Under the pieces are notes generated by a model, which had not been told where the DNA came from, made no database searches, and saw only the letters and a list, made by a program, of their open reading frames with translations. Both the position numbers and the translations under genes were made by a program. Positions 8,735 through 47,783 of a stretch of 64,000 nucleotides of DNA are shown here, in pieces. The stretch lies in NCBI GenBank assembly GCA_038496445.1, contig JALMLS010000488.1:186001-250000 (forward strand), in the 5' to 3' direction. This DNA comes from Trichosphaerium sp. ATCC 40318. Lineage: Eukaryota > Protista > Tubulinea. How positions within the stretch are numbered: the stretch's first letter is position 1; each line of letters starts with the position of its first letter.

Positions 8735-10104
8735 TTATTTCATCTCTTCTGGTGATGGCAAACATTTATAAAAGCAATAAGCATCTGTTTTTTTGGTGTG
8801 CTTGGGATCAAGGTAGTTGTTTAAATAAAATTCCACTTTGTGAGCATTGTCAGGAATGCAAAAAGCGTCTTGCATTGAACGAACTTGTTTTTCGTTAAAG
8901 GCTTCACCTTTCAGAGAAACACTTTTTAATTGCCTTCTTCTTCTGTTAAATATAGTCTCAAGAACACTTCTTGCTGGACTACAACCAGATGCTGACACTG
9001 CCAAATGTTGTAACTTTGGAAAACACTTTTCATTTTGAAGTGCTTTTAACATGTACACAGGTCTACACGCGAACCGTACATTCAAGAAAGCAAATACCCT
9101 TATATTAGATTTCGTGCATCGTTCAATGGCTTCTTCAACCACTCGTGATATATAGCGTGGCGCGAAATCATCAGTCTCTGATGTGATATTATTTCTAAAA
9201 TAAAACATGTCAAATAAAGGTATTAACAAAAAAGGAAAGAAAAAGGCTTATAAGTTGTACCTGCGAGTGAATCTAACAATGAAAGTTTGAAGTGACTTGC
9301 AGTCCGGTACAGCCACCATGAGTTTCTCCCAACAATGTTTTTTAAAGCCAACTTCGCTAAGAATCAATTCAACCAAATTATTTTGTGCCATTCTGATTGT
9401 CATTGCTCTAATCAATGCAATATCGCATAACCACCTGGATTTTGGTACACGAATAGCATATGATAGGGGTTCTAGAGCTTTAATAATATGAAATATGATC
9501 TCCATCGGTAGTAATCCAAATAATCCATCTTCTTTATAGTGAGATAGAAAAATAAGCCTCAAAATCTTCCATTCGATATTTTCTTTGACTATCCTCCAGT
9601 TTCTTTCATACTCCTCTAGATAAGAGCTTACATGTCTAGTTATATGTATACGGTGTAGAGGTATAGACACGTCATATCTAAGGTTGACATTAACGAGAAG
9701 AAGTAGAATAACAAAAAAATTGAACTTTCTTGAAAACGTGACAATTTCGCTCAAATGAAAAATAATTTTGCGATCAAAACAGTCTAATAATAAGAAAAAG
9801 ATAACCCAAATTACGCTTACACTGTGCTATCGAAATCTACCTTATATTGCTTTATCGCGAACTTCAGAACTGTACGTCGTATATTTGTAATGTATTTGGC
9901 TCGCTCTTCAGCCCCACAACTCGGTACAATGTGGTGGGTAATTTTACCTTTCATGCATATAGATAAAACCATTTTACCTTTGCGTGATTTTGAGTTACGA
10001 AAAATGTAGCAAGGTTTCACTTCGCTGTTTTCTAGAAGAAGGACGGCATCAGCTGGCGTTAAATATGGTAAATAGTCGGAGTGAACACTCTTGAAGTCAT
10101 CCAT
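8735..10104 (-). CDS. SH2-domain protein with F-box-like motif and degenerate LRR-like C-terminus
   Basis: Exon 1 YLTPADAVLLLENSEVKPCYIFRNSKSRKGKMVLSICMKGKITHHIV fits SH2 with the betaB5 Arg. Middle exon FGLLPMEIIFHIIKAL is F-box-like. C-terminal CKSLQTF, CFPKLQHLAV and QLKSVSL are LRR-like. A GTAAGC donor at ~9821 links the exons. Confidence 0.65.
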
Positions 10105-10324
10105 ACTGTTTTCGTTGTATAAAAGCGTAATTGATGGCTAAGGTACGTTGTTTAAGTTGCCCGGATTAGGAACCAGTTTGTGTACCACTTGTTCACCCAA
10201 GATGCAAAACTCTTATCCCGCGGTAGCGTGCGTTTAAACAAACTCACTAGTAAGTATTAACAAACTATTAATAATACTGTAAAAAACATCTTTGGAACAA
10301 ACAAAATCATGATTAAGTTTTTTT

Positions 10325-13173: not shown

Positions 13174-13551
13174 TTTTAAACCGAAGAAGAATGAATAAAA
13201 CAAGAAAGTCCAAACCTGTATAAACTGGATTAGTGGTTTTGACTCATACATAAACAGCATTTCTAGCTTTATGGAGAAACACATTTAAAACTACCTGACA
13301 CAGTACTTTGTGCTACACAAAATCGAATCTGCAATTTGCTGATGAAGAAAGGCTTTTGTGTTTAGTATGGACCGTTTTAGGTGCAAAGGGTTTATTTTAA
13401 CCTCACCTGCCTAATAATAACTCTTTCAAACTGAGGAGAAGGTGCCAGATGTATTAACTGTTATAATTTATGTCAATTAATCTTTGACCTTGGTTTGACC
13501 TTTGTCTCCAAACGAGCGCGAACTATGAACATACCTGGTACATGATTTGCA

Positions 13552-17728: not shown

Positions 17729-20700
17729 CTAGTCAGCTTTCGCAGGAATGGCCTCATTATCAGTTTCTTTTCCTTCTGTTTCATCTTTTGGTGTAGTGTC
17801 TTGGTCCGAAGAGTCTGAAACAACATCAGAATCACTTGATGTGATACTTTCTTCATTGTCGGTATCTGTCCCAGGAATAGCATCATAGGCAGTTGCTTCA
17901 TCATCTTTTGGTTTAACGTCTACAAAGTTCTCTTGGTCCGAGGATTGTGAAACATCATCAATAGTGCCTGAACTAGCGCTTTCCGTCGTATCACTATCAG
18001 CATCTTTACCAGGAATCGTACCATAGGCAGTTTCTTTCATATCTTGTTCTTTGATACTGTCTGTTAATTAATAAGGTTAACTACTGTCACGTGCCTTTAT
18101 CGCTTTTAAGTACTTCACTTGGGTGGTTGTGTGCTGAGTCTTTCATTGCCTGTGATAAGTCATGAGGTACAGCGGTGTATACTGTATCTTTGTTTTCATT
18201 TTGTGGTGAACTTGTTTCTTTCATTTCCACAACTTCTGATGCTTCAATACCAGTAACACTTGTTTTAGAAGTAATGTCACTCGGATTAATACTTGTTTTA
18301 GGTTTCTTTGATTTTCGCCAAGAGACTAGTATGCCAATAACCAGTATAATCAGCAGAATAACCAAAATAAACAAAAACAAGGATACGTAGAACCATGCAG
18401 AAAGACCTACAAGCCAAAGATTAATAAACAGGTTAACTAATCATATAATTTAAGCACCTCGTTCATCAGAGTTCATATCTTTATTGTCTGAAGACAGCAT
18501 TGGAGCATCAGAGGTTTGATTGACTTGTAAGGTAAGTAATAAGAACGTGGATATGTATTCAGAGTACCAGTTGGAATAGTTGTTGTAGTTGGTGGAATAG
18601 TTGTTGGTGGCGGAACAGTTGTTGGTGGTGGAATAGGAGCAGTACTTTGAAAACAAGATGCTAAAGGTTCATAGATACATTCAGGAGCTAGTTGCGCCAC
18701 ATTTCCATAAGTTACATCAGTGTAAAACCAACTTTGGTTGCTTGGTATTTCTGTACAATCAGGTTTTTGTTCTTCACAAATCTACGTAATACAATCAATA
18801 AATAAGATGAAAAGAACCTTTAAAAACGGCATCTTCAGTTAACATAGTTTAGTTAGTTGAATTTTCGTACAGTATTCAGAGACACTTCCTGGCACCCTGG
18901 AGCAAGGCCAGGGGTCCGATCAGTAAGAGAGCTATTGCAAAACTGTATCCGATCTGGAAGATACATGTCACATTCAAAAAACATTGAACCTGGAACACGA
19001 TTATGTTTCACACATCCCAAATCACAATCACAGAAGTTTGTTGTACAAATATCATCATCTTGCTGACAATCATCTTGTGTACAGTTACATATATTGTTTA
19101 CAGATTTGCAGAGTGCTGCATTTGGTCTACATTCGTCATCTACACTCTTTAGCACATAGTGGGCTGTAGCAATAACGTACCAAAGATTGGACCTAGTGGC
19201 AATGATGCAGGATCACATTCTTCTGTTTCTCTATTTGGACCTAATGAATTTGTTAGTGATCCATAGTCATGGTTTGTGGGCTTACATATTTGGGTAAATT
19301 CACCTTCAGATGATCGACAAATTGGATGTTTTGAATGCATGCATCCAATGCTTGATGATACGAATTTGTCTTCAGTGCAAATGTTGTAATCATTACATTC
19401 AAAAGGTTCTGGGCACACACATTCTAAATCACAAGTACACACTCCTTTGCATTGAGGACCACAAGGTGTTGTTAGGTGTTCTAAACAATATCATCATTAA
19501 ACAACAAAGGGTATTGAGTCATTACCTGGACATAGAAGAGGCCTTGTTATCTCATTTGTGTTTGTACTGTTGCCTGGAATTGGTGTATATTGATCGTATC
19601 CGCTAATGACAGGATCATGTCCAAAGAACATCTCGATGATTGAAACGTTCTGGCAAATACATGAGTATAAAACAATAATTACTGTGTGCTTTCGAATTTT
19701 ACCATTGCCATTAGTTCATCTAATATAGTTTGTAGGTCACTCGCATCACCAATACAGTCATTGCTATCTCCATGTGTATTTACAATGATTGTTTTTTTAT
19801 TTCGATTGGGTCTACCAAGCAATTCAAAGTGTTGTTTTGTGCCTTGGAGACCTAAAGCATTGCGTCAAGGTAATGATAACTCTATAAACGCTAAGCACCT
19901 GTTGCAAGCGATTGACAACCAGCAAAAGTATTCAAAGTACGGATTGAAGATAGTTCGTCAATAAACTTTGTTTTGTTTCTTGAGCTGAGAGGTATCACAG
20001 GATGACCTTGATTGCGATACAACACAACACCTGATCGGAATCCAAACTCTCCAAACTTCAACGGTTGTACTGTGTCATGAATGAAATCAAAGTATTCATC
20101 CCAGTTGTACATTGTACAACATTCATCAATTGATTCTCGTTCATACAATCCAAAAGTACCATTTCCATTATCCTCACAAATAGAAGATCCTAAAACACAC
20201 CTCAGATTGATGACATAGTAATAATTGACTGACCTGTTCTTGAGCATTCAGAAGTATCATTATTGAAGATATTTCCAACGCTTGATGATGCATCAACCAC
20301 TAAACAAACAAGTAAGAGAAGAATCATTTTCGCACAACAAACAACAAGTAGTACAGAAAATTAAATCAACATTATCAACACAAAGAGATGTCTCACTACA
20401 TGGTGAAGGAAATTCGATTGGCTCGATAAATTGTCTACGCAATGGTGTAAGGCTTTCGGGAGGTAATTCCAAAATAGTCCCATCATAATACAATACTCTA
20501 AAGAAGAATAAGTGGAACCAAACTCTTAAAAAAAAAACGGTGGTACCGAGCAAGTCTGTTGTCTTCTTGTGCATAGTATACTTTGTGAATATCAAACAAT
20601 GTTCCTGCTGCGCCCTTAATAGCCTCTCGCTCTTCTATATTTCTAAATAATAGACAAGTCAAAAAGGAGAACTGCAACACAAACTTCCAAATGACATACG

Positions 20701-21617
20701 TAAGTACTATGAACGAGTTTCCAAGAGCATCTGTTTGTTTTATTTCTTCTGCAGTAACTAATTGACCAGTCCTATTAAACATAGATCCCAGGCTTGGTAT
20801 AGTAGTTGAAAATGTGCGCGTGTGACACATAGTATCACCACAGTTGTGTTGTTGGATAATAAAAGGCTACACATAAAGTAAAAAAACCCATATCCGTGAA
20901 CTATTGCTGGTGCAAATTTTTCTGACATTTCGTTTAAAACAGGACATTTTTTGGATAAGAGCATAAAATATCCAGTTTTCTAGGCGCCTATAATCTCTTA
21001 AACCCTTTTGTTGCGCTAAGAAACTGTAAGTTTTTGGCTGTTTACAGGACTTTGCCTAAGAAAACTCATAATTTTATGCTCTTATCCAACTTTTTTTTTT
21101 GAAGATAGATTTGCTTTTATACTTATAGTAGTTATCTGTGGGCGTAAGGTATTCATTAAAGACCTTAGACTAAATAAAAATATCCCTGTTTTAAACGAAA
21201 GTCTACATGCAGTATGTGAGGAAGTTGTGTTGCAGATGCAAGCAAGCCTTCTGGTTTTTTTTGAGAGGAAAGTTAGAATTATTAAGTTTATAAACGCACA
21301 TTATCAAGGCTCCAACGCTCAAAGATTGACGGTGAGTTTTCTGAATTGTCAGCAAAGAATATTTCAAAGCTCTGGACAAAGCTCTCGGTGTCTGTTATGT
21401 TAATTGTTGTCTTGAACTGGAAAATACCTACTCGAACGCGCTAAGGGGTGTAAGAGAGAAATCCACGCCAACTTTTTTTGATTCTTACTGTGTTATTGGT
21501 TCCTGATAGCAATGGCGCTACCACAGGTATACTAATAGACTCGCTGAGCAAGCTTGTATCTACTAATACGTATGTAGATAATAATACCAGAAGAACAATA
21601 CGCCCAACATCCCACAT
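17729..21617 (-). CDS. Receptor paralog A: signal peptide, variable N-domain, vWA, Cys-rich repeats, PT stalk, TM, Tyr-motif tail
   Basis: Signal MWDVGRIVLLVLL; spliced DLIFLVDASSSVG (MIDAS DxSxS); CNDYNICTEDK; TM FLFILVILLIILVIGILV; tail TVYTAV, TAYGTI, TAYDAI. Confidence 0.8.
20924..21203. mobile_element. ~280-bp foldback/MITE-like insertion in intron 2 of receptor A
   Basis: Outer inverted repeat TTTCGTTTAAAACAGG / CCTGTTTTAAACGAAA and perfect inner 19-bp inverted repeat TTGGATAAGAGCATAAAAT (20951-20969 / 21071-21089). Absent from the matching intron of paralogs B-D. Confidence 0.7.
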
Positions 21618-21831
21618 GGCTTGATGTTCGTTTTTTTTAATTTCAGCGAAGTACACGTGATTACTACAAAAATAAAACACAAACAGTTCGTTTTTGTGAG
21701 GTTAAGGAGGCTACATCTTTGGAATATTCAACAAAGACAGCCAGCCTTCTGAGATTAGCTTAACTTTCACGTGAGCTTACAAAAAAAGCAGAAGTTCAAC
21801 CAGTTCAACCACCGAACCAAGACATCACATA

Positions 21832-22829
21832 ATGACGCTTTATCTCGTTGTTTTCGCCGTTGTTGTGTTTTCTTTAGTAGACGCAATGCCCATTGCCACA
21901 GAGACACCTGAGTACGTAAAATTTGTTAGTCGAAGTAGTTCTGTCACATCTGACAGCGGTTCTCGCTTATCTAGACTCCCAGTAGCGTTTACCGCTAGTT
22001 TGATACAATATTACGCTCCAAATACATCTCACGTTGGTCCTTACCCTAAAACAAATGTCCCTCCGCCACCATACGTCGCTAGCAGGTTGACAACATATTA
22101 TGACTGGAGTAAAAAGTACGTTAAACAGAATCACTTTAAACGGTCGGCATTCGCTTACTTATTGATCTAGACGAATGATTGAGGACTATCTAGACTACTG
22201 CGTACCTATATGGGTCGCTGGATACAAGTGGAAGTGTAAATTCTTGAACGTTGATGGTAAGGACAATTTTCAGAAAAACCAGTTGTCACGTGATTTATAA
22301 ATTTTTTTTGTTAGGCCTAACGTATTTGATTACTTCTGATGATCGCCCAAGTTGGGTGGAAGGACCTTGTTGTGTGGTATGAAAAAGATTTCTTTCAGTG
22401 TATTAAACCCATAACTCTATCGTGACAATGTTATTAGTTCAGGGATCCATGGAATCCACCAGCTCCAGACTTTGTAAAGGTGAGTGCCTTATTTCGTTTG
22501 TTTTTCTGTGATTCTCATGAACTTTGTTTTAGGCTTTAAAGTATGGTGGTACTACTGATGTTGATGAACGTACTGTAGACTATTATGTGCTTGAAGGTGG
22601 TTTCTTTTATGGATACTACCGCGATACAGGAATGCCTGCTTTCTTCGATTTTTCTGGCATTGATGGACCTCCTATTCTTGAAGGTTATGCTACACAAAAC
22701 TACGCTTCTATTGATCCTACCCTTCCACCCGAGGAGGTTTGGACAATACCAGAATCGTGTAAACAATTAGCACCAAATTGTACAACAGGACCAAGTTTTC
22801 TCAACAAAAGAGGAATGTTTGGCCTGTAG
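21832..22829 (+). CDS. Secreted protein, probably ependymin-related (LolA-like fold)
   Basis: Signal peptide; LPVAFTAS; TYYDWS; GPCC; PPAPDFV; C-terminal PEEVWTIPESC is typical of the ependymin-related 'F.iP..C' ending. Confidence 0.55.
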
Positions 22830-22928
22830 TTCTTTGGAAGTTCAATAAATACATCAACCCATATTAGGACTTTTTCTGAATTACGTATTGTGAAGGATAG
22901 ATTCATTGGTTAATTTATTTCTTGTATC

Positions 22929-25900
22929 TTAAGAGTCTGAAACAAAATCAGGATCACTTGATGTGATACTTTCTTCATTGTCGGCGTTCGCAGTAATAGC
23001 ATCATATGTAGTTGCTTCATCATCTTTTGGTTTAATGTCTACAAAGTCCTCTTGGTCCGAAGAGTCTGAAACATCATCAGAATTGCTTGATGTGCTGGTA
23101 CTTTCTTCAATATTGCCACGGCTTCCAGGAACAGGATCGTATGTAGTTTTGTTTACTTCTTGATTTTCACTGCTTCCTATTTGATCAAAACAAATCAGCA
23201 AATATATAGAAGACATTTTTAGGCGCTTGTGAAAAGTGACTTGCCTGCAACACTATTTAGTTTTCCACTTGATTGAGTTTTCATTGCTTGGACTAAATCA
23301 TGAGGTACAGCAGAGTAGATATCACCCTCGGTTTTTTCATTGTTTATTGATGGACCATGCATTTCTACGCCTTCTGATATTCCTGGGACAACACCTGTAT
23401 CGCCTATTTTAGAAGTGCTCATTCCAACATTATCTGTTGGCCTACTTTTTTCTTTTTTTTTGTTCTTGTGTATGACGATGATCAAGCCAATAACCAATAT
23501 TATCAGTAAAACAACCAAAAGAATCAAGGCCAAAGATACAGGGAACCATGCAGAATGACCTTGTAAATCATGAGATAAACAAGTTTTTAGTTCTAAAAGG
23601 ATTTGTTTTTAACATACCTTCTTCATCCTCACCTTGATTATCAATGACTCCAAAAGACAATGTTGGGCCATCAGTAGTTTGATTAACTATTCGCAATACT
23701 TAGTAGACATTACTTATTTGTAATGATGTTTTAGGAGTACCATTCGCTGTAGGTTCAGAGGTAGGTGGGTTTGTTGAATGTTCTGTAGTTGGCGGATGAG
23801 TGGTAGGAGAGGTTGTTGTAGGTGGAACGGTAGGCGTTGGAATAGTTGTTGGCGGTGGAATAGGAGCAATATTCTGAAAGCAAGACGCTAAAGGTTCATA
23901 GACACACTCAGGAGCTAGTTGTATCACACCTCCATAAGTTACATCAGTGTAAAACCAACTTGGGTTACTTGGTATTTCTGTACAATCAGGTTTTTGTTCT
24001 TCACAAATCTACGTAATACAATCAATAAATAAGAATGAAACAGACTTGCAATCACTTTGTTTGGTTCACTTTTAAATTTTTGTGTTTTTTCTTCGTACTG
24101 TTTTCATAGACACTTCCTGACACCCTGGAGCAAGGCCAGGGGTGCGATCAGTAAGAGAGCTATTGCAAAACTGTATCCGATCTGGAAGATACATGTCACA
24201 TTCAAAAAACATTGAACCTGGAACACGATCATGTTCCATACATCCTTGTTCGCAATCGCAGATAGTTGTTGTACAAATATCATCACTTTGCTGACAATCA
24301 TCTTGTGTACAGTTACATGTACGGTTTATAGCTTTACAATAGTCGCTGCCTTGTGGATACAAACACCCTGTTCTGGTAGCAGTTCCATCTAATATAGTAA
24401 GTACGGTTGTATTGTGTTATTCAACTTACCAAATGTAGCCGGAGATCCAAGACTACTGGATGTGGGTTCACATTCTTCTTTCTCTCTATTTGGACCTATA
24501 TATGAATTTGTTAATGATCCTTAGCTTTATGACTTGTGGGCTTACATATTTGGGTAAATTTATCTGTCGCTGATCGACAAATTGGATGTTCCAAAGATAC
24601 ACATCCAATACTTGGTCCAGCAAATTTGTCTTCAGTACAATAGTTATAGTCATCACAAGTTCCCAAAGTAGGACTTATGCATTCTAAATCGCAAGTACAC
24701 TCTCCTTTGCATTGAGGACCACAAGGTGTTGTCAGGTGTTCTAAACAATATCATCATTAAACAACAAAGGGTATTGAGTCTGTACCTGGACACAGAAGAG
24801 GCCTTGTTATCTCACTTGTGTTTGTACTATTCCCTGGAATCGAAGTGTACAAGTTTTGAACGTATGTGATGACGGGTTCTTGACCAAAGTACATCTCAAT
24901 GATTGAAACGTTCTGCAAACAAATAGTTCAGTAGACAAAATTAAAGACTTAGAGAGTACAATTACTGTACCATGTCCATTAGTTCATCCAATATAGTTTG
25001 TAGGTCAGTCGCATCACCAATACAGTCATTGGTATCTCCATGTGTATTTACAATGATTGTTTTTTTATTTCGATTGGGTCTACCAAGCAATTCAAAGTGT
25101 TCTTTTGTGACTTGGAGACCTAAAGCATTGCTAGTATAAGGAAGTGATCCTCTACAAAGATGTTACCTGTTGCAAGCGATTGGCAACCAGCAAAAGTATT
25201 CAAGGCTTTGATTGAAGATAGTTCGTCAATAAACTTTGTTTTGTTTCTTGAGCTGAGAGGTATCACAGGATGACCTTGATTGCGATACAACACAACACCT
25301 GATCGGAATCCAAACTCTCCAAACTTTAACGGTTGTACTGTGTCTTGAATGAAATCAAAGTATTCATCCCAGTTGTACATTGTACAACATTCATCAATTG
25401 ATTCTCGTTCATACAATCCAAAAGTACCATTTCCATTATCCTCACAAATAGAAGATCCTAAAACACACCTCAGATTGATGACATAGTAATAATCGACTGA
25501 CCTGTTCTTGAGCATTCAGAAGTATCATTATTGAAGATATTTTCAACGCTTGATGATGCATCAACCACTAAACAAACAAGTAAGAGAAGAATTATTTTCG
25601 CACAACAAACAACAAGTCGTACAGAAAATTAAATCAACATTATCAACACAAAGAGATGTCTCACTGCACGGTAAAGGATATTCTTCAGGCTCACCAAGTT
25701 GTCTCCTAAATGGCGGAAATGTATGGGACATATCAATAATAGTTCCATCGTAATACAATAAGCTTAAGGGAGTAAATACGACAAGCCTGAATATAAAAAA
25801 AGAAAGATATGTTAGGCATACCGAGCAAGTCTGTTGTCTTCTTGTGCATAATATATATACCTTTTGAACATCAAACAGTGTCCCTTCTGTACCATTTATT

Positions 25901-26542
25901 CTTGGTCGTATTTCTACATTTCTTAAAAAGATCTGTAAGAGTTATAGTTGTAACTTAAAACCTAACATACGAGGTTACAAAATCAAGCTTGTCAAAAAAT
26001 GCCCGCTGAAAAATATCCACTGTCTCAACCACGTTTCCAGTTGGAGAAAATATATCTTGTTCCATCTCTGGTATGTTTGTAGATAGTATACGCACATGGC
26101 AAGAATCTAGACATTGACGTTGTTGTATTATAAACGGCTATGCAAAGTATAAAGGTAATAAACTGATTCATTGTCACGTGATTTCATAAAAATCACGTGT
26201 TCCAACTTTTTTAGGTGTTTTCCACAAACGCACATTATCAAGGCTCCAACGCTCATAGATTGATGGATAGGATCCTCCACGTGAAAAGTATATTTGGATA
26301 CCTTCTATGGCACTTGTATTATTATTACGTGATACAGTATATTGGAAATCCCCCATCCGTACATGCTTTAGAAAGAAGTCAACTACTTTTCAAACAGGAT
26401 CTGCTTCATATCATACCGCGTTATTGGCTCCTGAGCGTATGGTAGCAACGAAAGGTCCACCAACCGTTGTTTGTTCTGTTGTTCCAAATACGCTCAGGAA
26501 TAATAGCAATACAATAAAAGCGATATAGCAAACGTGCCACAT
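22929..26542 (-). CDS. Receptor paralog B (same architecture as A)
   Basis: Signal MWHVCYIAFIVLLLFLSVFG; vWA exon near-identical to A, C and D; tail DIYSAV, TTYDPV, TTYDAI. Confidence 0.8.
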
Positions 26543-27122
26543 GCGTCGTACGTAAGAGATTTCTTGTAACATGTGTTTAAACGTAAGTGCACAAACAATT
26601 TATAGTCCTACATGTTAAGGCAGAATTAAAACGTGTAGACTTGTATGGTATTTCTATATCACTTGTTTAACAGTTACAGGGTGGAAATAAGGCTGTTGAT
26701 CAAACCGGCGAAACTCTTGTGAATCATTCACATGGTCATGGAACAAAACACACAAGTCGGATAATTATGCGACGAGGATGGTATTATTAAAAAAGGAGTA
26801 ATTTGGTACAACCTTGAGAAACTACAAAAGATTAGCACAAGAAAGTAAACTCAAATACTAGACGATACATTCGAACCAAAAAAAGTAAACATTGTGGCAG
26901 CTGGAAACAATCTTCTATCTATCTAGTACTTATAAATGGTATGAACTGGATTTGAAATGATCCGTCTTGCTCACAATTCAATACTAGTATCTAAGCAGCC
27001 AGACCTTCCTAGGTATGTTTTAGCTGGCATCACTCTAAAGACTGTTTTTTCTTGTGATTGTTTTTTAGTCATTTTTTACTTCTATTTCTACATAGTACAT
27101 AGTTTCAGTAGTGTTTGATTGT

Positions 27123-30100
27123 TTAAGAGTCTGAAATAACATCAGAATCACTTGATGTGATACTTTCTTCATTGTCAGCTTTCGCAGGAATAGCATCGTA
27201 TGTAGTTGCTTCTTCTTCATCTTTTTTAATGTCCACATAGTTCTCTTGATCTGAAGCAACATCGGCATTGCTTGATTGAGTTTTCATTGCTTGGACTAAA
27301 TCATGAGGTACAGCAGAGTAGATATCGCTGTCTTTTTGTTCATTATTTATTGACGGACCATGCATTTCTATGCCTTCTGATATTCCTGCAATAACACCTG
27401 TATTGCCTATTTTAGAAGTGATCCTTCCAGCATTGTCTGGTCCCTCACTTTTTTTGTTCTTGTAAATGACGATGATCAAGCCAATAACCAATATTATCAA
27501 TACAATAACCAGGATAATCAATACCAAAGATACAGAGAACCATGCAGACTGACCTTGTAAATCATGAGATAAACAAGTTTTTAGTTCTAAAAGGATTTGT
27601 TTTTAACATACCTTCTTCATCCTCGCCTTGATTATCAATGACTCCAGAAAACGAAGTTGGAGCATCAGTGCTTTGATTAACTGTTCGCAATTAGTAGAAG
27701 CGAGTAATGAAGGTTTAGGAGTACCATTCGTTGTAGGTTCAGAGGTAGGTGGGTTTGTTGGAGGTTCTGTAGTTGGAGAATCAGTGGTTGGAGGAACTGT
27801 AGTTGGTGGAATGGTAGTCGGAGGATCTGTAGTTGGAGAATCAGTGGTAGGTGGAACAGTAGTTGGTGGAATGGTAGTCGGAGGATCTGTAGTTGGAGAG
27901 GTTGTTGTAGGTGGTGTTGTGGTTGGCGGATTAGTTGTTGGTGGAATGGTTGTTGGAGGATCAGTGGTAGGAGGGGTTGTTGTAGGTGGTGTTGTAGTTG
28001 GCGGAATAGTAGTTGGTGGCGGTGGAATAGTACTTTGAAAACAAGATGCTAAAGGTTCATAGATACATTCAGGAGCTGGTTGTGTCACACCTCCATAAGT
28101 TACATTAGTGTAAAACCAACTTGGGTCACTTGGTATTTCTGTACAATCAGGTTTTTGTTCTTCACAAATCTAAACAATTCAGTCACTTTGGTTCACAGTT
28201 CTCTTTTAATTTTTTTGAGTTTTCTTCGTACGGTTTTAATAGACACTTCCTGACATCCTGGAGCCATATCTAGCTGAGTATTCATAAGAGAACTATTGCA
28301 AAACTGTATCCGATCTGGAAGAAACATGTCACATTCAAAGAATATTGAACCTGGAACACGATCTTGTTTCACACATCCCAAATCACAATCACAGAAGTTT
28401 GTTGTACAAATATCATCACTTTGCTGACAATCATCTTGTGTACAGTTACATGTTCGATTTACAGCTTTACAATAGTCGCTGCCTTGTGGATACAAACACC
28501 CTGTTCTGGTAGCAGTTCCATCTAATATAGTAAGTACGGTTGTACTGTTTTATTCAACTTACCAAAGGTAGCCGGAGATCCAAGACTACTGGATGTGGGT
28601 TCACATTCTTCTTTCTCTCTATTTGGACCTAATGAATTTGTTAGTGATCCTTAGTTTCATGATTTGTGGGCTTACATATTTGGGTAAATTCGTCTGTTGC
28701 TGATCGACAAATTGGATGTTCCAAAGATACACATCCAATACTTGGTCCAGCAAATTTGTCTTCAGTACAATAGTTATAGTCATCACAAGTTCCCAAAGCA
28801 GGACTTATGCATTCTAAATCGCAAGTACATTCTCCTTTGCATTGAGGACCACAAGGTGTTGTCAAATGTTCTAAACAATATCATCATTAAACAACAAAGT
28901 GTATTGAGTCAGTACCTGGACATAGAAGAGGCCTTGTTATCTCATTTGTGTTTGTGCTATTACCTGGAATTGGTGTATATTTATCGTATCCGCTGATGAC
29001 AGGTTCATGTCCAAAGAACATCTCGATGATTGAAACGTTCTGGCAAATACATGAGTATAAACAATAATTACTGTGTGCTTTCGAATTTTACCATTGCCAT
29101 TAGTTCATCTAATATAGTTTGTAGGTCAGTCGCATCACCAATACAGTCATTGCTATCTCCATGTGTATTTACAATGATTGTTTTTTTATTTCGATTGGGT
29201 CTACCAAGCAATTCAAAGTGTTCTTTTGTGACTTGGAGACCTAAAACATTGCGTCAAGGTAAATTATAACTCTATAAACGCTAAATTACCTGTTGTGAGT
29301 GATTGACAACCAGCAAAAGTATTCAAAGTACGGATTGAAGATAGTTCGTCAATAAACTTTGTTTTGTTTCTTGAGCTGAGAGGTATCACAGGATGACCTT
29401 GATTGCGATACAACACAACACCTGATCGAAATCCAAACTCTCCAAACTTTAGCGGTTGTACTGTGTCATGAATGAAATCAAAGTATTCATCCCAGTTGTA
29501 CATTGTACAACATTCATCAATTGATTCTCGTTCATACAATCCAAAAGTACCATTTCCATTATCCTCACAAATAGAAGATCCTAAAACACACCTGAGATTG
29601 ATGACATAGTAATAATTGACTGACCTGTTATAGAACATTCAGAAGTATCATTATTGAATATATTTCCAACGCTTGATGATGCATCAACCACTAAACAAAC
29701 AAGTAAGAGAAGAATTATTTTCGCACAACAAACAACAAGTCGTACAGAAAATTAAATCAATATTATCAACACAAAGAGATGTCTCACTACATGGTGAAGG
29801 ATATTCTTCAGGCTCGTCAAATTGTCTTCTAATTGGAAATATATCTGGCATATCAATAATAGTCCCATCGTAATACAATACGCTGAAGGGATGTGTCACA
29901 TGAAATTGTAGACCAAAAAAGGTAGTTTTAGCTTACCGAGCAAGTCTGTTGTTTAAATCATAGTATAGATTTTTAACATCAAACAGTGTCCCTTCTGTAC
30001 CATTTATTCTTGGTCGTATTTCTACATTTCTTAAAAAGATCTGTAAGAGTTATAGTTGTAACTTAAAACCTAACATACGAGGTTATATACATGGTATCGA

Positions 30101-30673
30101 TAAACAGCCGCTGAAAAATATCCACTGTCTCAACCACGTTTCCAGTTGGAGAAAATATATCTTGTTCCATCTCTGGTATGTTTTTAGATAGTGTACGCAC
30201 ATGACAAGAATCTAGACATTGACGTTGTTGTATTATAAACGGCTATACAAAGTTAAACACCCAATGGTAATAAAAAAAACTGATTCTTTTGAGATGTTGA
30301 AATCACGTGGCAACGTTACAGAACAAGTGTTTTTTGTTATTATGCATAAACGCACATTATCAAGGCTCCAACGCTCATAGATTGATGGTAAAAAGTCTCT
30401 ATTGTCTTTAAAGTATATTTGGATACCTTCTATCGCACTTGTATTATCATTACGTGTTACAGTATATTGGAAATTCCCTATCCGAACATGCTGAAGAACA
30501 AAAGAAGTTAATTACACTTTTTCAAAATGATTTGCTTCATATTGTACAGCGTTATTTGCTCCTGAGCGTATGAGAGAAAGGAAAGGTCCACTGGTCGTTG
30601 ATTGTTCTGTTGTTCCAAATGCGCTCAGGAATAATAGCAATACAATAAAGGCGATATAGCAAACGTGCCACAT
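27123..30673 (-). CDS. Receptor paralog C (long PT stalk, shortened tail)
   Basis: Same exon series; about 20 PTT-type pentamers; tail DIYSAV, ENYVDI, TTYDAI. Confidence 0.8.
27745..28025 (-). repeat. Pro/Thr mucin-like coding repeat (15-bp units, 60-bp higher-order unit)
   Basis: PTTIP/PTTDP/PTTVP/PTTDS units; a 60-bp unit is repeated at ~27767-27900. Confidence 0.9.
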
Positions 30674-31097
30674 TCGTCGTACGTAAAGATTTCTTTAGCA
30701 CGTGTATGAACGCAAGTGCACAAACAATTTTTAGTCCTACATGTTAAGGCACAATTTACAACGTGAGTAGACTTGCGTGGTGCTTGTATCTCACTTCTTA
30801 CCAGTTCTACGCTGGAACAATTACTACAAACCGGCGGATCTATTGTGAATTGAACCATGGTGCTCATGGAACAAAACACAAGTCGGATAATTACGCTACA
30901 AGAATGGTCTTAACAAATACAAAGCAATTCAGTACAACCTGGAGAAACAACGAAAGACTAGCACAAGTAAGTAAAATCAAATTAACTAGACATTCGAACA
31001 AAAAAAGTAAACACGTTATGTGGCTTTAATAGCTCATTAACAAAGAAGGTTCTATCTAATATATTACATTTATTTAATAACAAAAAATCTGAGTGCT

Positions 31098-31712
31098 TCA
31101 TTTAGAATACAAAGTAGTTGACTTTGACCAAAGCGAACTGAATTGAGTGTAAAATTGTTCTGCAACGGTAGCATTGTTAAAAACCATTATGCTCTCCATA
31201 TTTATGCGTGCAGAAGAACCTGTGTAGTTGTATGATCCTGTGATGACTTGTTTGCCGTCAACCAAGAGTGTATTACTGCGCATTTGTCCTTTTCCTGACC
31301 ATAGTTTGACTTTTGCTCCTCGAAATTGTAGAACTTTGACACAGTACTGCATTTCTCTTCTCTTTGTAGTGTAATACTTATCGCTATCGAGTACCAGCAA
31401 CACCTTTAATTTAGGTGTGCACTTCATAACGCGAGCGATAGCATAAGCAATCTCGTAATCTGTAAAAGTGTTCATTGTCAATTGAATAGTTCTCTTTGCT
31501 GATTTGATAAGACGAAGAATTTGTTTCCTTGGGTGAGAGTCGGATACTTTTCCTGAAGGGTTTGTGAAGAATACTTTAGGAGGAGTGATGCTGTTTTCTA
31601 GTGGCTTGTTGGATTCTGTAGATAGTTCGTTGATTGAAGGTAGCAGCTGTCCTTTTGAGTTTGTGCTTAGAAGTGGTGTTTGTAAGTATTGCTTTCTTGG
31701 TGTTCTTGGCAT
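31098..31712 (-). CDS. PLD-like (Zucchini/PLD6/Nuc-type) single-domain protein with degenerate HKD motif
   Basis: VFF...ILRLIKSAKRTIQLTMNTFTDYEIAYAI...VLLVLD...MRSNTLLVDGKQVITGSYNYTGSSARINMESIMV. Intronless; the start could extend to 31796. Confidence 0.85.
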   Translation of the reverse strand: MPRTPRKQYLQTPLLSTNSKGQLLPSINELSTESNKPLENSITPPKVFFTNPSGKVSDSHPRKQILRLIKSAKRTIQLTMNTFTDYEIAYAIARVMKCTPKLKVLLVLDSDKYYTTKRREMQYCVKVLQFRGAKVKLWSGKGQMRSNTLLVDGKQVITGSYNYTGSSARINMESIMVFNNATVAEQFYTQFSSLWSKSTTLYSK

Positions 31713-32297
31713 TATGTTGTTGGAGGGTGTTTTGTAGAGAGAGAGAGGTGTTGTTAAAGTGTTGTGAAACTTGTTGTATTGAATGTAGTCGATCACTTTC
31801 TCTCTCCGTTAAAATGTCGTTTCAATAAAACTTTCCTTTTTTGGTCATATTTCTTGTTTCAAATGCTTGTACGCCTAGCTAAAATGTTCAGAACTCATTG
31901 AAGGAGTTTTAAAGAGAAACGAGTGTACCATTTATAGTAAAGGTTTTCTTGTAATTCGACTTCGCAGTGAGTGACATTTTCCTTCTGTAACATCTCTAAA
32001 AGCTTGTTGCAAGTATCAGTAACGTATGGGCATGCTATGTTAGTGATTTTACAGAAAGAAAGTCATGAAAATAAAAAAAGATTTTCTGCAACAAGTCTAG
32101 CTGAAAATCTATAATTGTAACGTCGTGCACCTGACAAATCTGTTATAACCTCGTTACTTAGCTAGTATACACGGCTATGACGTTGCAGGCATAGTCACAA
32201 GAACCATAACGTACAGGGTTGGTAGAAAGAAAATAGTGTTAAAATCAGTGTAAATTGACTTTCTAGGACAAAACTAGCTTTCACAGTATCCATAACA

Positions 32298-33741
32298 ATG
32301 GAGCAACTACCGATTGAGATGTGGTATGCTATATTAACGGAAATGCCGTACGCGCATTAGAGTTTTACGTGTTGAAACTGAAACAGCTTCCTTTTGGCAG
32401 AATTATAGCTGCTTTCGCGTGTAGAGTAGTATGTAAGGCTATGAGGCAAATAGTGGCCCCTTTTGAGTTTGTAAAGGCAAGGTGTTGTTTACCTGTTAAA
32501 TGCTCATGCCTGCCGCGTAGACTGCGACCATTGTATGTAAGAACGTTGATTTATTCGCTCGGTGTACGTTTTTTAACAAAACGTCGTTGTTTTAATTTAA
32601 ACGCCCCCCAAAGCTTTTAGAACGTTTCATATGAACGAATGCATCGATTGTTTTGTTGTTAAAACCAACGTACTGTCACTTTTACTCGTAAGCGTCAATA
32701 ATACGTTTAGCTATTTTTGGTGAGCTCGTGGTACATAACAGTCGTTCCAATTGACAAAGGAAGGTTGCAGTTCAGAAGAAAAAAAAACGTGCGGAAAACG
32801 TGTCAGAATTTTTTTGACAAAACGGTGCTTGCCTCTTCGTTTTGCTACCAGTGCTGCGAATTCTGAGTTTGAATAACGCTTGCAAGACCTTTATTTTGAC
32901 TTACTTGTATTACTAGTCAGTTTATCACACGCGGTGAAATGTGCAGTAAATCAAAAGAAAAATAATGTTGCTGTACTTGCATCAGGGATTTTTGAGAAGC
33001 AATGTTGGGGATATGATTTGGAACGTAAAGGACCACTAACAAAAATGTTTGAGTGTAATACAGGCACCAAAGATAAGTATGATATATCTCTAAAAAGTGA
33101 TGGGACAGTTGTATTGGCAGGAGGGAATGTTTTAGTGACAATAGCACCTTGCGGAAAACAAAGGTAAGAAAAAAATAGGAAAAACAATTTCAATCTCACT
33201 TTGTCGTCTCAGGCAGACTACTCTACTGCGTGTGGCTGGTAAAGAATCTACTTGCGATGGTTTATGTGATCCATTAGAAGACATAACAGATGAAGATTTT
33301 GATATAATACCAGAATGGGCATTTATAGCTTACAAAGACTTAAACCAAGCAACAGTTTTACAGATAAACGCAATTTCAGTGACAACAACTGATGATATTT
33401 TCTTTATTGATGGAGATAATACGATACGTGTTATATCATGTGGTGTTATAAAAACAGTTTATAAGATTGATGATGTTATTGTATCTATATGCCATGATAT
33501 CAAGGGATACCTCTACTATAGTACAATCAGTGAAGTTTTCAGAATATTTTTTGACAAGAACGATTATATTTACGGAAGATGTTACGCTTTGAAAATCAAG
33601 TTGTATATGCCTATACCTTCTCTTATTAAGAAAATACGGTATGCCAATGGTAAGATTTATGTGCTAGCACCTAAGATACAACGAGTTCGATACAAAGGTT
33701 GTTTTGGTGACTCTGGGTTGTGGGTTCTTAAGATTAAATAA
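32298..33741 (+). CDS. F-box-like plus NHL/beta-propeller-like protein
   Basis: Exon 1 MEQLPIEMWYAILTEMP is F-box-like. Last exon VAGKESTCDG...AISVTTTDDIFFIDGDNTIRVISCGVIKTV is NHL-like. Middle exons are uncertain. Confidence 0.5.
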
Positions 33742-33939
33742 ACATATCCAAAACCTCAACTTAGTAACTCTTTTGCTCGCTGCTGCTCGGTTAATAGATT
33801 GTGTACTTTATTCATGTTGTTTCGTAGAGCAGTAAGCATGTGCCATGCCTTGTATTTGAACTCTTTTTTCTTCATAACAAATTGTTGTGCACTTACTATC
33901 GCACACGTGTTTTTACGAGAAATCTCCCATAAGAGAAGC

Positions 33940-36900
33940 ATGTGGAGCGTTTGTATCACTCTAATTGTTTTATTATTACCTATTTCATTTGTAAAGACTC
34001 AAACTGTATTCTCCAGTGGCGGCCAGTTAGCTACTATACGCTCAGGAGCGAATAATACAGTACGACACTAAACACCTTTTTAGAAACGGTTATATTTGAA
34101 CAAACTTTAAATTTCTCTAGCTTATTCGAACAGGGCTTTTCTTATACATTGAGACACGCGATGATAATACAAATGCGTTAACTAATGTCGATATATACTT
34201 TCAAAATGATAACGCCGCCTCAGCCTCAATCTATGAGTATTGGAGCGTTGATAATGTGCGTTTATACAAATTTGTGGACAATATCTCCAACTTTCTTTTG
34301 TCGGCGTAATCACGTGATTTTCACGAAAACAGAGATGCCAATACAATCAACGACGGAGTTGCGAAATACCCTTGTTGTTGACGTGTTGGCTGTGAAGTCG
34401 TGGTTTTTAATTAAAGTTAAACAACTGTTCTTTTTTACTCCTTTATAGCCTTTTATTGTCCAACAACATAACTGTGACGGTTCTTGCCACAGGCGTACGT
34501 TACAAACGATGGTACCCCGATTGGGAAACGATCTTTTTCAAGATACTGACTCACCAGAGCAAGATATAATTATACAGAAGCTCGATACTGGTACTTCCTT
34601 TCCGGTCAACACGTATGTTGGTTATGAGTCTTGCAAATCTTTTAACTGTGCTATTACTTACAGTTTTTTTAAGAAGCGTAGAAATACGACCAAGAATAAA
34701 TGGTACAGAAGGGACACTGTTTGATGTTAAAAATCTATACTATGATGTACAAAACAGACTTGCTCGGTATGCAACAATGCTACATGTTTGATAAAGTAGT
34801 TTTTAATACTTTCCTTAAGCGTACTGTATTATGATGGTACTATAATTGATATACCAAGGCAATTCCCTGGAACGAACATAGCACCTCCGGCTCCATGTAA
34901 TGAGACATCTCTTTGTGTTGATAATGTTGATTTAATTTTCTGTACGACTTGTTGTTTGTTGTGCGAAAATGATTCTTCTCTTACTTGTTTGCTTAGTGGT
35001 TGATGCATCATCAAGCGTTGGAAATATATTCAATAATGATACTTCTGAATGTTCAAGAACAGGTCAGCCGATTATTATTACTATGTCATCAATCTGAGGT
35101 GTGTTTTAGGATCTTCTATTTGTGAGGATAATGGAAATGGTACTTTTGGATTGTATGAACGAGAATCAATTGATGAATGTTGTACAATGTACAACTGGGA
35201 TGAATACTTTGATTTCATTCATGACACAGTACAACCATTAAAGTTTGGAGAGTTTGGATTTCGATCAGGTGTTGTGTTGTATCGCAATCAAGGTCATCCT
35301 GTGATACCTCTCAGCTCAAGAAACAAAACAAAGTTTATTGATGAACTATCTTCAATCCGTACTTTGAATACTTTTGCTGGTTGTCAATCACTCACAACAG
35401 GTAATTTAGCGTTTATAGAGTTATAATTTACCTTGATGCAATGCTTTAGGTCTCCGAGGCACAAAAGAACACTTTGAATTGCTTGGTAGACCCAATCGAA
35501 ATAAAAAAACAATCATTGTAAATACACATGGAGATACCAATGACTGTATTGGTGACACGAGTGACCTACAAACCATATTAGATGAACTAATGGCAATGGT
35601 ACAGTAATTGTTTGTACTCTCTAAGTCTTTAATTTTGTCCACTGAACTATTTGTTTGCAGAACGTTTCAATCATTGAGATGTACTTTGGTCAAGAACCCG
35701 CCATCTCATACGCTCAAAACTTGTATACTTCGATTCCAGGGAATAGTACAAACACAAGCGAGATAACAAGGCCTCTTATATGTCCAGGTACTGACTCAAT
35801 ACCCTTTGTTGTTTAATGATGATATTGTTTAGAACATTTGACAACACCTTGTGGTCCTCAATGCAAAGGAGAATGTACTTGCGATTTAGAATGCGTATTT
35901 CCAGAAAATATAGAACCTTGTGATGACTATAACTATTGTACTGAAGACAAATTCGCTGGACCAAGTATTGGATGTGTATCTTTGGAACATCCAATTTGTC
36001 GATCACCGACAGGTGAATTTTCCCAAATATGTACGTCCACAAAGACAAAGACAAACATAAACCAAAAAAGAAGTGTTGTATTTTCTCAAACTACTTTTTT
36101 GCACGTGAAGGTATCAGACCTGATAAATCTAGAAGCTAAGGATCACTAAACAAATTCGTTAGGTCCAAATAGAGAGAAAGAAGAATGCGATACCGCGTTC
36201 CCAGATTCTGAGATTCCAGCTATAGTGGGTAACTGTGATAAAAAAATGTATACAAACTAATTTGTTTTTAGAAGAAACTCCGTTTGGCGAACGTGGGTGT
36301 TCATACCTACCAAACCAAGATTATTGTAAAGCTATAGACCGTACATGTAACTGTACACAAAATGATTGTGATCTAAGTGATGATATTTGTAAGATAAATC
36401 TCTGTGATTGCGAAAAAGGATGTATGAAACATGATCGGGAACCAGGGACAATATTTTTTGGATGTGACATGTATCTTCCAGATCGGATACAGTTTTGTGA
36501 CAGCTCTCTTATGAGTTCTCCGGCAGAAAATTCTCCTGGATGTCGGGAAGTGTCTATTAAAACCGTACGAACAAAACTCAAAAAAATTAAAAGAGAACTG
36601 TGAACCAAAGTGACTGAATTGTTTAGATTTGTGAAGAACAAAAACCTGATTGTACAGAAATACCAAGTGACCCAAGTTGGTTTTACACTGATGTAACTTA
36701 TGGAGGTGTGACACAACCAGCTCCTGAATGTATCTATGAACCTTTAGCATCTTGTTTTCAAAGTACTGCTCCTATTCCACCGCCAACAACTATTCCGCCA
36801 CCTACAACAACCTCTCCTACCACTGATCCTCCAACTACAGAACCTTCAACAAACCCACCTACCTCTGAACCTACAATGACTGGTACTCCTAAAACATCAC

Positions 36901-37731
36901 TATGCTTCTATTACTTATTTTACAAGTGAATCAAACTACTGATGGCCCAACATCGTCTTTTGGAGTCATTGACAATCAAGGTGATGATGAAGGTACATGT
37001 ATAACGTAATGCTTTATCTCATGACTTACAAGGTCGGTCTCCATGGTTCTCTGTAGCCTTGGTTTTGATTATCTTGGTTGTTTTATTGATAATATTGGTT
37101 ATTGGGTTGATCATCGTCATTTACAAGAACAAAAAAAAAGAAAAAAGTAAGGGGTCAATAACTTCTAAAATAGGCGATACAGGTGCTATTACAGGAATAT
37201 CAGAAGGCATAGAAATGCGTGGACCATCAATAAATAATGAACAAAATGAGAGTGACATCTACTCTGCTGTACCTCATGATTTAGTCCAAGCAATGAAAAC
37301 TCAATCAAGTGGAAAACTGAATAGTGTTGTAGGCAAGTCACGTTTTCACAAGCGCCTAAAAAAATATCTTCATTATATTTGCTGATTGTTTTGACAAAAC
37401 AGGAAGCAGTGAAAATCAAGAAGTAAACGAAACTACATACGATCCTGTTCCTGGAAGCCGTGGCAATATTGAAGAAAGTACCAGCACATCAAGCAATTCT
37501 GATGATGTTTCAGACTCTTCGGACCAAGAGAACTATGTAAACACTAAACCAAAAGAAGAACAAGCAACTACGTATGATGCCGTTCCTGCGAAAGCTGACA
37601 ATGGAGAAAGTATCACATCAAGTGACCTTGAAATAGGAGACACAACTACGTACAATGCCATTCCTGCAAAAGATACCGACAATGAAGAAAGTATCACATC
37701 AAGTGATTCTGATGTTATTTCAGACTCTTAA
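33940..37731 (+). CDS. Receptor paralog D (inverted relative to A-C)
   Basis: Signal MWSVCITLIVLLL; VDASSSVG; CDDYNYCTEDK; TM at ~37050-37120; tail DIYSAV, TTYDPV, ENYVNT, TTYDAV, TTYNAI; stop TAA at 37729-37731. Confidence 0.82.
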
Positions 37732-41152: not shown

Positions 41153-41550
41153 TTTTTGAACCAAGCTAAGGTAAGTAATCTCACCTAACTGTTACGACAG
41201 CATATTGTAAATCTTTGAACTTTCAAAGTAAATAAACAACCTAACTGCTACGGCAGCATTTCTTAACCGCACGCGGCCTTTTTACCTGGATTAACCAGGA
41301 ATCGAGTAATCTTTACTCACCCTAACTGCTACGGCAGCATTTTAAACCGTGAAGCGCAGTGCTTCACAATAAATAAACTATTAACCGCATAAAGCGGCCT
41401 TTAAACCATTTTGTGGTTTTCTTTTTCCTTATTGGAATTCGAGTAATAATTACTCAAACTTTTCTCTTTACCGCTCAGCGGCATCTATACTAAGCGTACT
41501 TGTTCCTACGCTATAATCCTCTTTCCATAAAATCTACTTTTCACGGAAAA

Positions 41551-47500: not shown

Positions 47501-47783
47501 CCCTTCCAATACCCACCCTATGTATGTGGTAAAGGAGATCTTAGAAGAAACATCTGACGTCCTCCACAATCAACCAGAGATGTCTTCGAAAAAGCTAAAC
47601 CGCATGAAGAAACAACTCAAACTTACATTCTCGACAAGTGCCGGTTTTATTACAAACTCCAGGCGTGCATCCCTTTACAGAAATGCAGTTCAACATACAG
47701 AATCACAAGATGAACTCATTCAGCTCTTGGACACGTGGATTCACACTTTTGACGACGAATTTTCCTACGATCTGGCGAAGTGA
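41551..47783 (+). CDS. Gag-Pol polyprotein (gag with CCHC knuckle, aspartic protease, dUTPase-like insert, RT, RNase H, integrase), split by a 1-nt shift in an A9 run at ~45279-45287
   Basis: CNWCKEKAHGKGVQC; MLDSGA; GFFQ...YMDD; LHTDAC...IGAVLEQ; GAHLG..C..C; IDVAGP, SDNG, VER; GPY. One extra A joins the two ORFs as LKKKDKPFIWED. Confidence 0.92.

Follow-up and report, generated by a model that had tools for sequence, protein, structure and literature searches.

A Four-Gene Array of Predicted Type I vWA Receptors with Repeated Tyrosine Motifs in Trichosphaerium sp. ATCC 40318

Within a 64,000-nucleotide window of the Trichosphaerium sp. ATCC 40318 genome (contig JALMLS010000488.1, positions 186,001 to 250,000, numbered here from the first letter of the window), positions 17729-37731 hold four paralogous genes, which we call copies 1 to 4; the minus strand carries the first three and the plus strand the last. 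The encoded proteins are predicted type I membrane glycoproteins, each with an N-terminal domain (N-domain), a von Willebrand factor A (vWA) domain, a Cys-rich region and a long tail with repeated tyrosine motifs. Judging from its database matches, this candidate receptor family is previously undescribed and almost absent from databases. We lean towards the view that the array encodes lineage-specific adhesion or ligand-binding receptors whose tail motifs dock cytosolic adaptors; it is from their layout that we infer a surface location, a role in adhesion or particle binding, and adaptor docking. A sequence-only reading of this DNA had set the limits of the array precisely at the stop codons of copy 1 (17729) and copy 4 (37731) and had described four kinase-less vWA receptors. 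The architecture is present in all four paralogs, but copy 2 is frameshifted.

To build gene models, we compared the open segments of one copy with the other copies by tblastn, aligned the four genomic regions and applied GT-AG and frame rules, with candidate introns judged by a splice-site matrix score and then by cross-copy agreement. All introns in the predicted models of the four copies are of the GT-AG type (59/59), and most measure 40–65 nt. Physarum-like amoebozoans, with a median intron of 231 nt compared with 45–60 nt here, do not agree with the array in intron size. Because one continuous open frame is kept over 15–16 exons in copies 1, 3 and 4, a chance origin of these three frames is excluded. 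Copy 4, the sole plus-strand copy, lies head to head with copy 3, while the tail of copy 1 terminates 9 codons ahead of the stop position common to copies 2–4. In copy 3, exons 15 and 16 are fused by an in-frame deletion, which costs one Tyr motif. The genes and their principal features are as follows.

21617..17729, minus strand: copy 1, 16 exons, 909 residues, intact open reading frame (ORF), the most divergent copy
Copy 1 features, minus strand: DASSS at 20294..20280; CNDYNICTED at 19397..19368; transmembrane helix at 18395..18312
Copy 1 Tyr motifs, minus strand: TVYTAV at 18185..18168; TAYGTI at 18031..18014; TAYDAI at 17893..17876
17935..17921, minus strand: QENFV of copy 1, with Phe at the Tyr position of copies 3 and 4
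26542..22929, minus strand: copy 2, 16 exons, frameshifted in exon 4
Copy 2 features, minus strand: DASSS at 25562..25548; CDDYNYCTED at 24657..24628; transmembrane helix at 23548..23465
Copy 2 Tyr motifs, minus strand: DIYSAV at 23323..23306; TTYDPV at 23147..23130; TTYDAI at 23012..22995
30673..27123, minus strand: copy 3, 15 exons, 926 residues, intact
Copy 3 features, minus strand: DASSS at 29685..29671; CDDYNYCTED at 28787..28758; stalk at 28034..27673; transmembrane helix at 27542..27459
Copy 3 Tyr motifs, minus strand: DIYSAV at 27326..27309; TTYDAI at 27206..27189
33940..37731, plus strand: copy 4, 16 exons, 921 residues, intact
Copy 4 head features, plus strand: signal sequence at 33940..34002; DASSS at 35002..35016; AGCQS at 35376..35390; NTHGD at 35521..35535; CDDYNYCTED at 35919..35948
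Copy 4 distal features, plus strand: Cys-rich region at 35781..36761; stalk at 36762..36934; transmembrane helix at 37044..37127
Copy 4 Tyr motifs, plus strand, starting at: DIYSAV, 37254; TTYDPV, 37432; TTYDAV, 37567; TTYNAI, 37645

No further copies or fragments of the receptor gene were found elsewhere in the 64-kb window. Some boundaries of copy 4 were revised: a candidate intron 2 at 34306-34492 was dropped for 34256-34448 (the PFI(V/I)QQ..C..C peptide is conserved), and cross-copy homology placed the intron 10 donor at 36031 and the intron 14 acceptor at 37032. In copy 1, intron 2 reaches 433 nt, versus 96–193 nt in the other copies, and contains nested inverted repeats with arms of 25 and 31 nt (20928-21200), consistent with a MITE-like (miniature inverted-repeat transposable element) insertion.

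The four aligned proteins present the same order of parts: signal sequence, N-domain, vWA domain, Cys-rich region, Pro-Thr (PT) stalk, transmembrane helix and acidic tail. The signal sequence is hydrophobic and follows the pattern MW.V...LLL, the N-domain spans about 190 residues, and the vWA domain starts at VDLIFLVDASSSV. Within the Cys-rich region (about 230 residues with 28 Cys) there is a single C(D/N)DYNxCTED. The proposal that this region consists of Cys-rich repeats of Dictyostelium type did not survive, as each protein contains C[DN]DYN.C a single time and with no Pfam match, and exon 10 of copies 1, 3 and 4 gave no Pfam match to the Dicty_CTDC family at E ≤ 1. The PT stalk varies from about 30 to 110 residues among the copies, and that of copy 3 is about 60 residues longer through 15/30/60-nt tandem repeats at 27757-28019. 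A 136-residue Gly/Val-rich ORF antisense to this stalk (27628-28038, plus strand) is a by-product of the tandem repeats and no gene. A juxtamembrane S(A/P)WF precedes the one transmembrane helix, which is followed by KNKKK, in keeping with the positive-inside rule. The ectodomain has 39 Cys in each of the four copies and 12–13 NxS/T sequons.

The tails comprise 112–175 residues, with about 20% Asp plus Glu, about 25% Ser plus Thr and a net charge of −13 to −25. They end in acidic Ser clusters of the ESITSSDSDV(I/V)SDS type, and each carries 5–12 S/T-x-x-D/E sites; none of the four contains Cys, Trp or a dileucine signal. Consistent with the earlier claim that the receptor genes encode no catalytic domain, a Pfam search and a kinase-motif scan found no catalytic domain or kinase signature in these genes or elsewhere in the window. 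All database searches used single exons rather than spliced proteins; at E ≤ 1, the N-domain, Cys-rich and tail exons of copies 1, 3 and 4 matched no Pfam family. An AlphaFold model of exon 12 built with the four paralogues reached a predicted local distance difference test (pLDDT) score of 37, too low for a fold search.

We assign the vWA domain on the basis of significant matches of the exon 7 peptide to two multi-vWA proteins from animals (E = 1.7e-12 and 1.3e-9), in each of which seven vWA units were matched. The Pfam VWA family (PF00092) was matched with E = 3.2e-4 and 21.4 bits, just below the gathering score of 23.8 because the query was only a 96-residue fragment. In a profile search of the Protein Data Bank (PDB), the vWA exon came nearest to collagen VI, at E = 0.0017, and to the integrin alpha2 I-domain, at E = 0.011. 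Directly behind the DxSxS loop, the array proteins carry an insert of about 40 residues with five Cys.

When the largest vWA exon was compared by HMMER with 1.84 billion representative proteins, five matches were obtained: one true homologue fragment, the two animal multi-vWA proteins and two spurious repeat proteins. The sole homologue (L001) lies on a 988-nt contig with a GC content of 38.6% (Ga0451486_072303 of JGI metagenome 3300044452), where a 107-residue ORF shares 45% identity with the vWA exon. The contig carries counterparts of exons 7, 8 and 10, and the limits of exon 7 are identical; its exon 10 reads CDDYNPCTE, and the insert cysteines and GCQ are kept. Judging from this fragment, the vWA-plus-Cys module occurs in at least one other organism. 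A metagenome scan with the exon alignment yielded no further relatives, a degenerate DNA pattern for KFGEFGFR gave 120 loci of which none was related by tblastn, and a profile of the transmembrane and tail exons found no match among 5.8 billion proteins.

The tyrosines of the tails share a distinctive context. All but one of the 14 belong to a Yxx[VI] motif (13 of 14), and Pro stands at +4 behind 11 of them. The stricter pattern TxYxx[VI] occurs nine times in the tails (3, 2, 1 and 3 in copies 1 to 4) versus none among the 88 ectodomain tyrosines (17–25 per copy), and relative to composition-preserving shuffles it is enriched with P < 5e-5 in copies 1 and 4, 3e-4 in copy 2 and 0.023 in copy 3. 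The motifs quoted in the sequence-only reading are all present where it placed them (9/9), and its statement that they fit TxYxx(V/I), the consensus of ITSMs (immunoreceptor tyrosine-based switch motifs), is borne out by these nine enriched matches, as a pattern match only. The YxxPhi/acidic-cluster pattern of sorting signals is also present, through the same 13 of 14 Yxx[VI] tyrosines and likewise as a pattern match only.

Two tail sites are common to all four copies, (I/V)Y(S/T)AVPHDL and AT(T/A)YDA(I/V). Three copies have a further site, T(T/A)Y(D/G)x(V/I)PG, which falls inside the in-frame deletion of copy 3. The tail of copy 4 contains an extra duplicated unit, TTYNAIP, whose counterpart in copy 1 lacks Tyr. 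The QENYV site has Phe in copies 1 and 2 and hence is no conserved Tyr site, and the most conserved site, D-I-Y-S-A-V, is without Thr at −2 in three copies. Conservation around the tail tyrosines covers Thr at −2/−1, Pro at +4 and an acidic context upstream. Since the motifs are conserved while the remaining tail is almost neutral (ratio of nonsynonymous to synonymous substitution rates, dN/dS, 0.4–1.2 for the tail), they appear to be short linear motifs under selection. Read as signals, they would fit phosphotyrosine-dependent docking of SH2 proteins and kinase-free sorting through YxxPhi and adaptor protein (AP) complexes with CK2-type acidic clusters with roughly equal weight, and one tail motif could serve both.

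The array evolved by duplication followed by repeated patchwork gene conversion, as is evident from homogenised introns and silent sites and from a nearest pair that switches along the gene. Introns 5, 6 and 9 show 87–98% identity between copies, equal to that of the flanking exons; in the N-terminal exons and introns, copy 4 is only 14–61% identical to copies 1, 2 and 3. Synonymous divergence (dS) is 0.05–0.14 in the vWA core versus 0.9–1.9 in N-domain exons 1–3. The conversion core exceeds 90% identity in 120-nt windows in six of six copy pairs, except at 35307-35420, where copy 2 differs. The core and its counterparts are located as follows.

34887..35540, plus strand: gene-conversion core in copy 4, mid exon 5 to exon 8 with introns 5–7 included, about 650 bp
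About 20410-19760: homologous tract in copy 1
About 25680-25030: homologous tract in copy 2
About 29800-29150: homologous tract in copy 3

Outside the core, the nearest pair alternates. From exon 8 to exon 9, copy 1 pairs with copy 3 and copy 2 with copy 4; at exons 10–11 and over the entire N-terminus, copy 2 pairs with copy 3; around intron 12, copies 3 and 4 are 99% identical; and from the stalk into exon 16, copy 2 pairs with copy 4. Gene conversion thus explains the near-invariant vWA domain, which is in itself no evidence of stronger protein constraint. The contrast between a near-invariant vWA domain and a divergent N-domain, which had been taken as the design of a variable receptor, is therefore real as an observation but does not argue for that design. 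Instead, the array clearly illustrates how gene conversion can imitate a receptor design with one constant and one variable domain.

For the N-domain, dN/dS amounts to 0.27–0.65 in the old pairs, with copy 1 against the others at 0.27–0.32 (dS saturated), and to 0.82 in the young pair of copies 2 and 3. The sequence-only reading had proposed dN/dS per exon across paralogs and strains as a check; among the paralogs, none of the N-domain values exceeds 1. Because the ratios lie below 1 across the regions of the gene, with the almost neutral tail at 0.4–1.2, we conclude that the genes are under selection. Between copies 2 and 3, the ratio of replacement to silent changes is 48:16 in the N-domain versus 54:50 across the vWA domain and Cys-rich region combined (Fisher p = 0.003). 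This rate excess is significant in that pair only and fits relaxed constraint or diversifying selection equally. The N-domain is old and fast-evolving, at a near-neutral rate. These evolutionary data comprise one haplotype and one partial orthologue, the metagenomic fragment.

The frameshift marks copy 2 as a pseudogene of very recent origin, as an error in the assembly or as a special case. In a four-copy nucleotide alignment, its exon 4 carries a TA-rich insertion at about 25855-25864 (minus strand), which amounts to 4 nt relative to copy 1 and 7 nt relative to copies 3 and 4. With canonical splicing, the reading frame meets a premature stop at codon 184, and it is open (932 residues) only with intron 4 (25821-25763) retained, which would put a hydrophobic stretch into the N-domain. 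Apart from this retention, the only alternative splice found that could rescue copy 2 was a weak donor, with 17 residues deleted.

In the receptor model towards which we lean, the N-domain and a disulphide-braced, atypical vWA domain would form a ligand-binding head, carried on the rigid 28-Cys region and a mucin-like stalk. The single transmembrane helix would link this head to a disordered, acidic, Ser/Thr-rich tail, in which (T/D)-x-Y-x-x-(V/I)-P, the one kind of element conserved there, is found two to four times and may act as an adaptor docking site. Gene conversion homogenises the vWA core, and the N-domain and tail stay free to diverge.

Several findings weigh against this model. The vWA domain had been credited with a DxSxS metal ion-dependent adhesion site (MIDAS), and DASSS is indeed kept in all four copies, but a sequence alignment with canonical vWA repeats places AGCQS at the Thr loop (GxTNTG-type) and THGD at the TDG motif, leaving the metal site incomplete. 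Because the Thr and Asp positions of the MIDAS are not kept, integrin-like metal-dependent binding by the vWA domain is doubtful. The metagenomic homologue reads QFAGE at the TDG position, and the MIDAS Asp is absent there too. Furthermore, NPxY, NxxY and other known adhesion-linker motifs were not found in any tail, searches of Pfam, of PDB and among 5.8 billion proteins gave no match to the N-domain, Cys-rich region or tail, and function is known for no homologue. The distal tail is joined by intron 15, whose splice signals are weak: two donor/acceptor pairs are equally good and differ by at most five residues.

The sequence-only reading had proposed a candidate polymorphic system for self/non-self or prey recognition; in such a model, the N-domain would be under diversifying selection and ITSM-type tails would recruit SH2 proteins. 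We regard such a system as unlikely, although the tails offer arguments for it: the nine TxYxx(V/I) matches resemble the ITSMs of the SLAM family, and the conserved Thr at −2/−1, Pro at +4 and acidic context exceed what a YxxPhi signal needs. The genes are also clustered as at allorecognition loci, and the N-domain of copies 2 and 3 has evolved faster than the remaining gene. In addition, a classical SH2 domain is encoded about 8 kb from the array, so that the reading of phosphotyrosine is possible in this organism.

9820..10137, minus strand: SH2 exon of a neighbouring gene, scoring 21.8 bits with Pfam PF00017 (gathering score 21.0)

This exon aligns with Crk and the N-SH2 domain of SHP2 and keeps the FLVR arginine. 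SH2 proteins are known from amoebae, both where true tyrosine kinases occur and where they do not (PMC4758236). Opposing a recognition system, the N-domain ratios never rise above 1, and the invariance of the vWA domain is due to gene conversion. The array numbers only four copies, of which one is broken; one Tyr position is Phe in copies 1 and 2, and the membrane-proximal Tyr lacks the −2 Thr in three copies. The window contains no tyrosine kinase, the ITSM readers SAP and EAT-2 are vertebrate proteins, and SHP2 and the ITSM kinases are animal proteins. We see a slim chance that a fuller version of this idea applies, namely a non-animal, kinase-less family in which TxYxx(V/I)P motifs would be genuine phosphotyrosine switches that recruit SH2 proteins and the N-domain would discriminate kin, mates or prey. 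If that were true, immunoreceptor-style signalling logic would have arisen independently of the Ig-family receptors of animals.

A trafficking or cargo receptor is improbable to the same degree as the recognition system. The proteins would cycle between Golgi, endosome and surface with luminal ligands, using YxxPhi signals for AP complexes and acidic clusters regulated by CK2. Furin, sortilin and the mannose-6-phosphate receptors exemplify such sorting signals, and the YxxPhi machinery is universal in eukaryotes. Each conserved tail Tyr has Val or Ile at +3, acidic Ser clusters stand at the tail ends, and no tyrosine kinase is required. However, each tail has two to four repeats of the motif, at 55–170 residues from the membrane, its conservation at −2/−1 and +4 goes beyond the needs of the mu subunit, and it is surface adhesins, rather than sorting receptors, that typically combine a mucin stalk with a vWA head.

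Much less credible is a motility adhesin like TRAP or MIC2, whose tail would be coupled to an actomyosin motor for invasion or for gliding that depends on a substrate. Like those proteins, the array proteins combine a vWA head, a low-complexity spacer, a transmembrane helix and an acidic tail with Tyr motifs. Unlike them, they have no thrombospondin-type repeat (no TSP_1 match) and no sub-terminal Trp, the tail containing no Trp at all, and in length the tail exceeds those of TRAP three- to fourfold; a classical SH2 gene would also be unexpected in an apicomplexan. We can all but dismiss a decaying, non-functional array conserved through recent duplication and gene conversion only, for although copy 2 is frameshifted, copy 1 stops early, copy 3 has a tail deletion and conversion can keep dead copies intact-looking, three ORFs exceed 900 codons over 15–16 exons, the N-domain of copy 1 is constrained against the others despite saturated dS and with no conversion there, the Cys count is equal in all copies, the deletion of copy 3 is in frame, and the module is kept at 45% identity in a second organism.

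The surroundings of the array also contain recognizable genes, and the predicted exons below, which belong to everyday housekeeping or signalling genes, confirm that it sits in a normal gene-dense region of a eukaryotic chromosome.

15614-15862, plus strand: RhoGEF exon
56001-56300, minus strand: NECAP (DUF1681) exon
10921-11145, minus strand: HCNGP-like exon
54322-54615, plus strand: HAD-type hydrolase exon
5034-5357, plus strand: TBC RabGAP exon, match weak, below the Pfam cut-off

The window has a GC content of about 36–37%, contains only short prokaryote-style ORFs and, according to Rfam, no RNA genes. Adjoining the SH2 exon, two minus-strand segments (9251-9826 and 8738-9247) look F-box/LRR-like by eye and had no Pfam match; an SH2 domain joined to an F-box/LRR-like C-terminus would be an unusual architecture. 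A 317-residue ORF at 12331-13284 (minus strand) had a divergent and partial Pfam match (E = 1.1e-8) to the MOZ/SAS acetyltransferase domain, of which it covers the first half only. Between copies 3 and 4, at 31098-31796 (minus strand), lies a single-exon PLD-like/SACK1 (FAM83-type) ORF with no homologue in the protein collection. An apparently intact Ty3/gypsy element occupies 41500-47783 (plus strand), encoding a gag-protease-reverse transcriptase of 1289 residues and an RNaseH-integrase of 782 residues. Its pol shares at most 35% identity with any of 5.8 billion proteins, with matches in a mollusc, a red alga, a tick, nematodes and metagenome contigs; the best matches are on environmental contigs, and the low identity suggests a poorly sampled host lineage. 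At 62348-63880 (plus strand), several open segments resemble, by eye, a separate vWA gene of the VIT/ITIH/VWA5A type, with DASFS near 62.6 kb and a further motif near 63.7 kb, and two of the segments had no Pfam match at E ≤ 0.01.

Taken together, the value of the array is that of a well-defined candidate rather than of a discovery, since its biology is what we infer. If expressed, it would represent an undescribed receptor family from a poorly sampled eukaryotic lineage, in which a remodelled integrin/collagen-type vWA domain is combined with two unmatched modules.

Compared with known systems, the predicted family is built like integrin beta, Sib and ANTXR but is a member of none, because each testable defining feature of these three families is absent. 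Integrin beta chains share with the array, in order, an N-terminal domain, a vWA-like domain, a Cys-rich stalk, a transmembrane helix and a tail with Tyr motifs. The array differs in that Pfam matched none of its exons to PSI, hybrid, I-EGF or integrin beta (E ≤ 1; copies 1, 3 and 4), in the lack of NPxY, in a vWA domain nearer the collagen VI/integrin alpha I-domain type, in an incomplete MIDAS and in its mucin-like PT stalk. The Sib proteins (SibA-E) have a vWA domain, a glycine-rich transmembrane helix and a tail that relies on short Tyr motifs for its function and carries two talin-binding NPxY motifs (PMC9197732). Like Dictyostelium Sib, the array is a small type I family of a microbial eukaryote with a vWA domain, a Cys region, a transmembrane helix and short Tyr motifs in the tail (PMC9197732). 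In contrast to Sib, its transmembrane helix has one Gly, its tails are without NPxY or NxxY, and its motif is TxYxx(V/I)P. Similarity to Sib surfaced in no search, a direct comparison with Sib sequences not having been made.

The animal proteins ANTXR1/TEM8 and ANTXR2/CMG2 are type I proteins with a collagen-type vWA domain, one transmembrane helix and a long, partly acidic tail, in which tyrosines control endocytosis. The array shares the collagen-type vWA head, the single transmembrane helix and the long acidic tail with tyrosines. Features of ANTXR that are not found in the array are a complete MIDAS, Anth_Ig and Ant_C (Pfam, post-vWA and distal tail exons), whereas the N-domain before the vWA domain, the 40-residue Cys insert and the 28-Cys region go beyond ANTXR.

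With tgrB1/C1 of Dictyostelium and Alr of Hydractinia, the array has in common tandem type I paralogues and a distal ectodomain that evolves fast; those systems have Ig/IPT-like folds and extreme allelic polymorphism, whereas the array paralogues have an N-domain dN/dS below 1. The SLAM/CD2 family (SLAM, 2B4) consists, like the array, of kinase-less type I proteins with several TxYxx(V/I) motifs, and TVYTAV, TTYDAV and TTYDAI closely resemble genuine ITSMs. Unlike that family, the array has no Ig-type Pfam match on any exon and conserves Pro at +4. With a tail motif barely distinguishable from animal ITSMs, the array may serve as a test case for ITSM-like function outside animals versus ancient YxxPhi signals.

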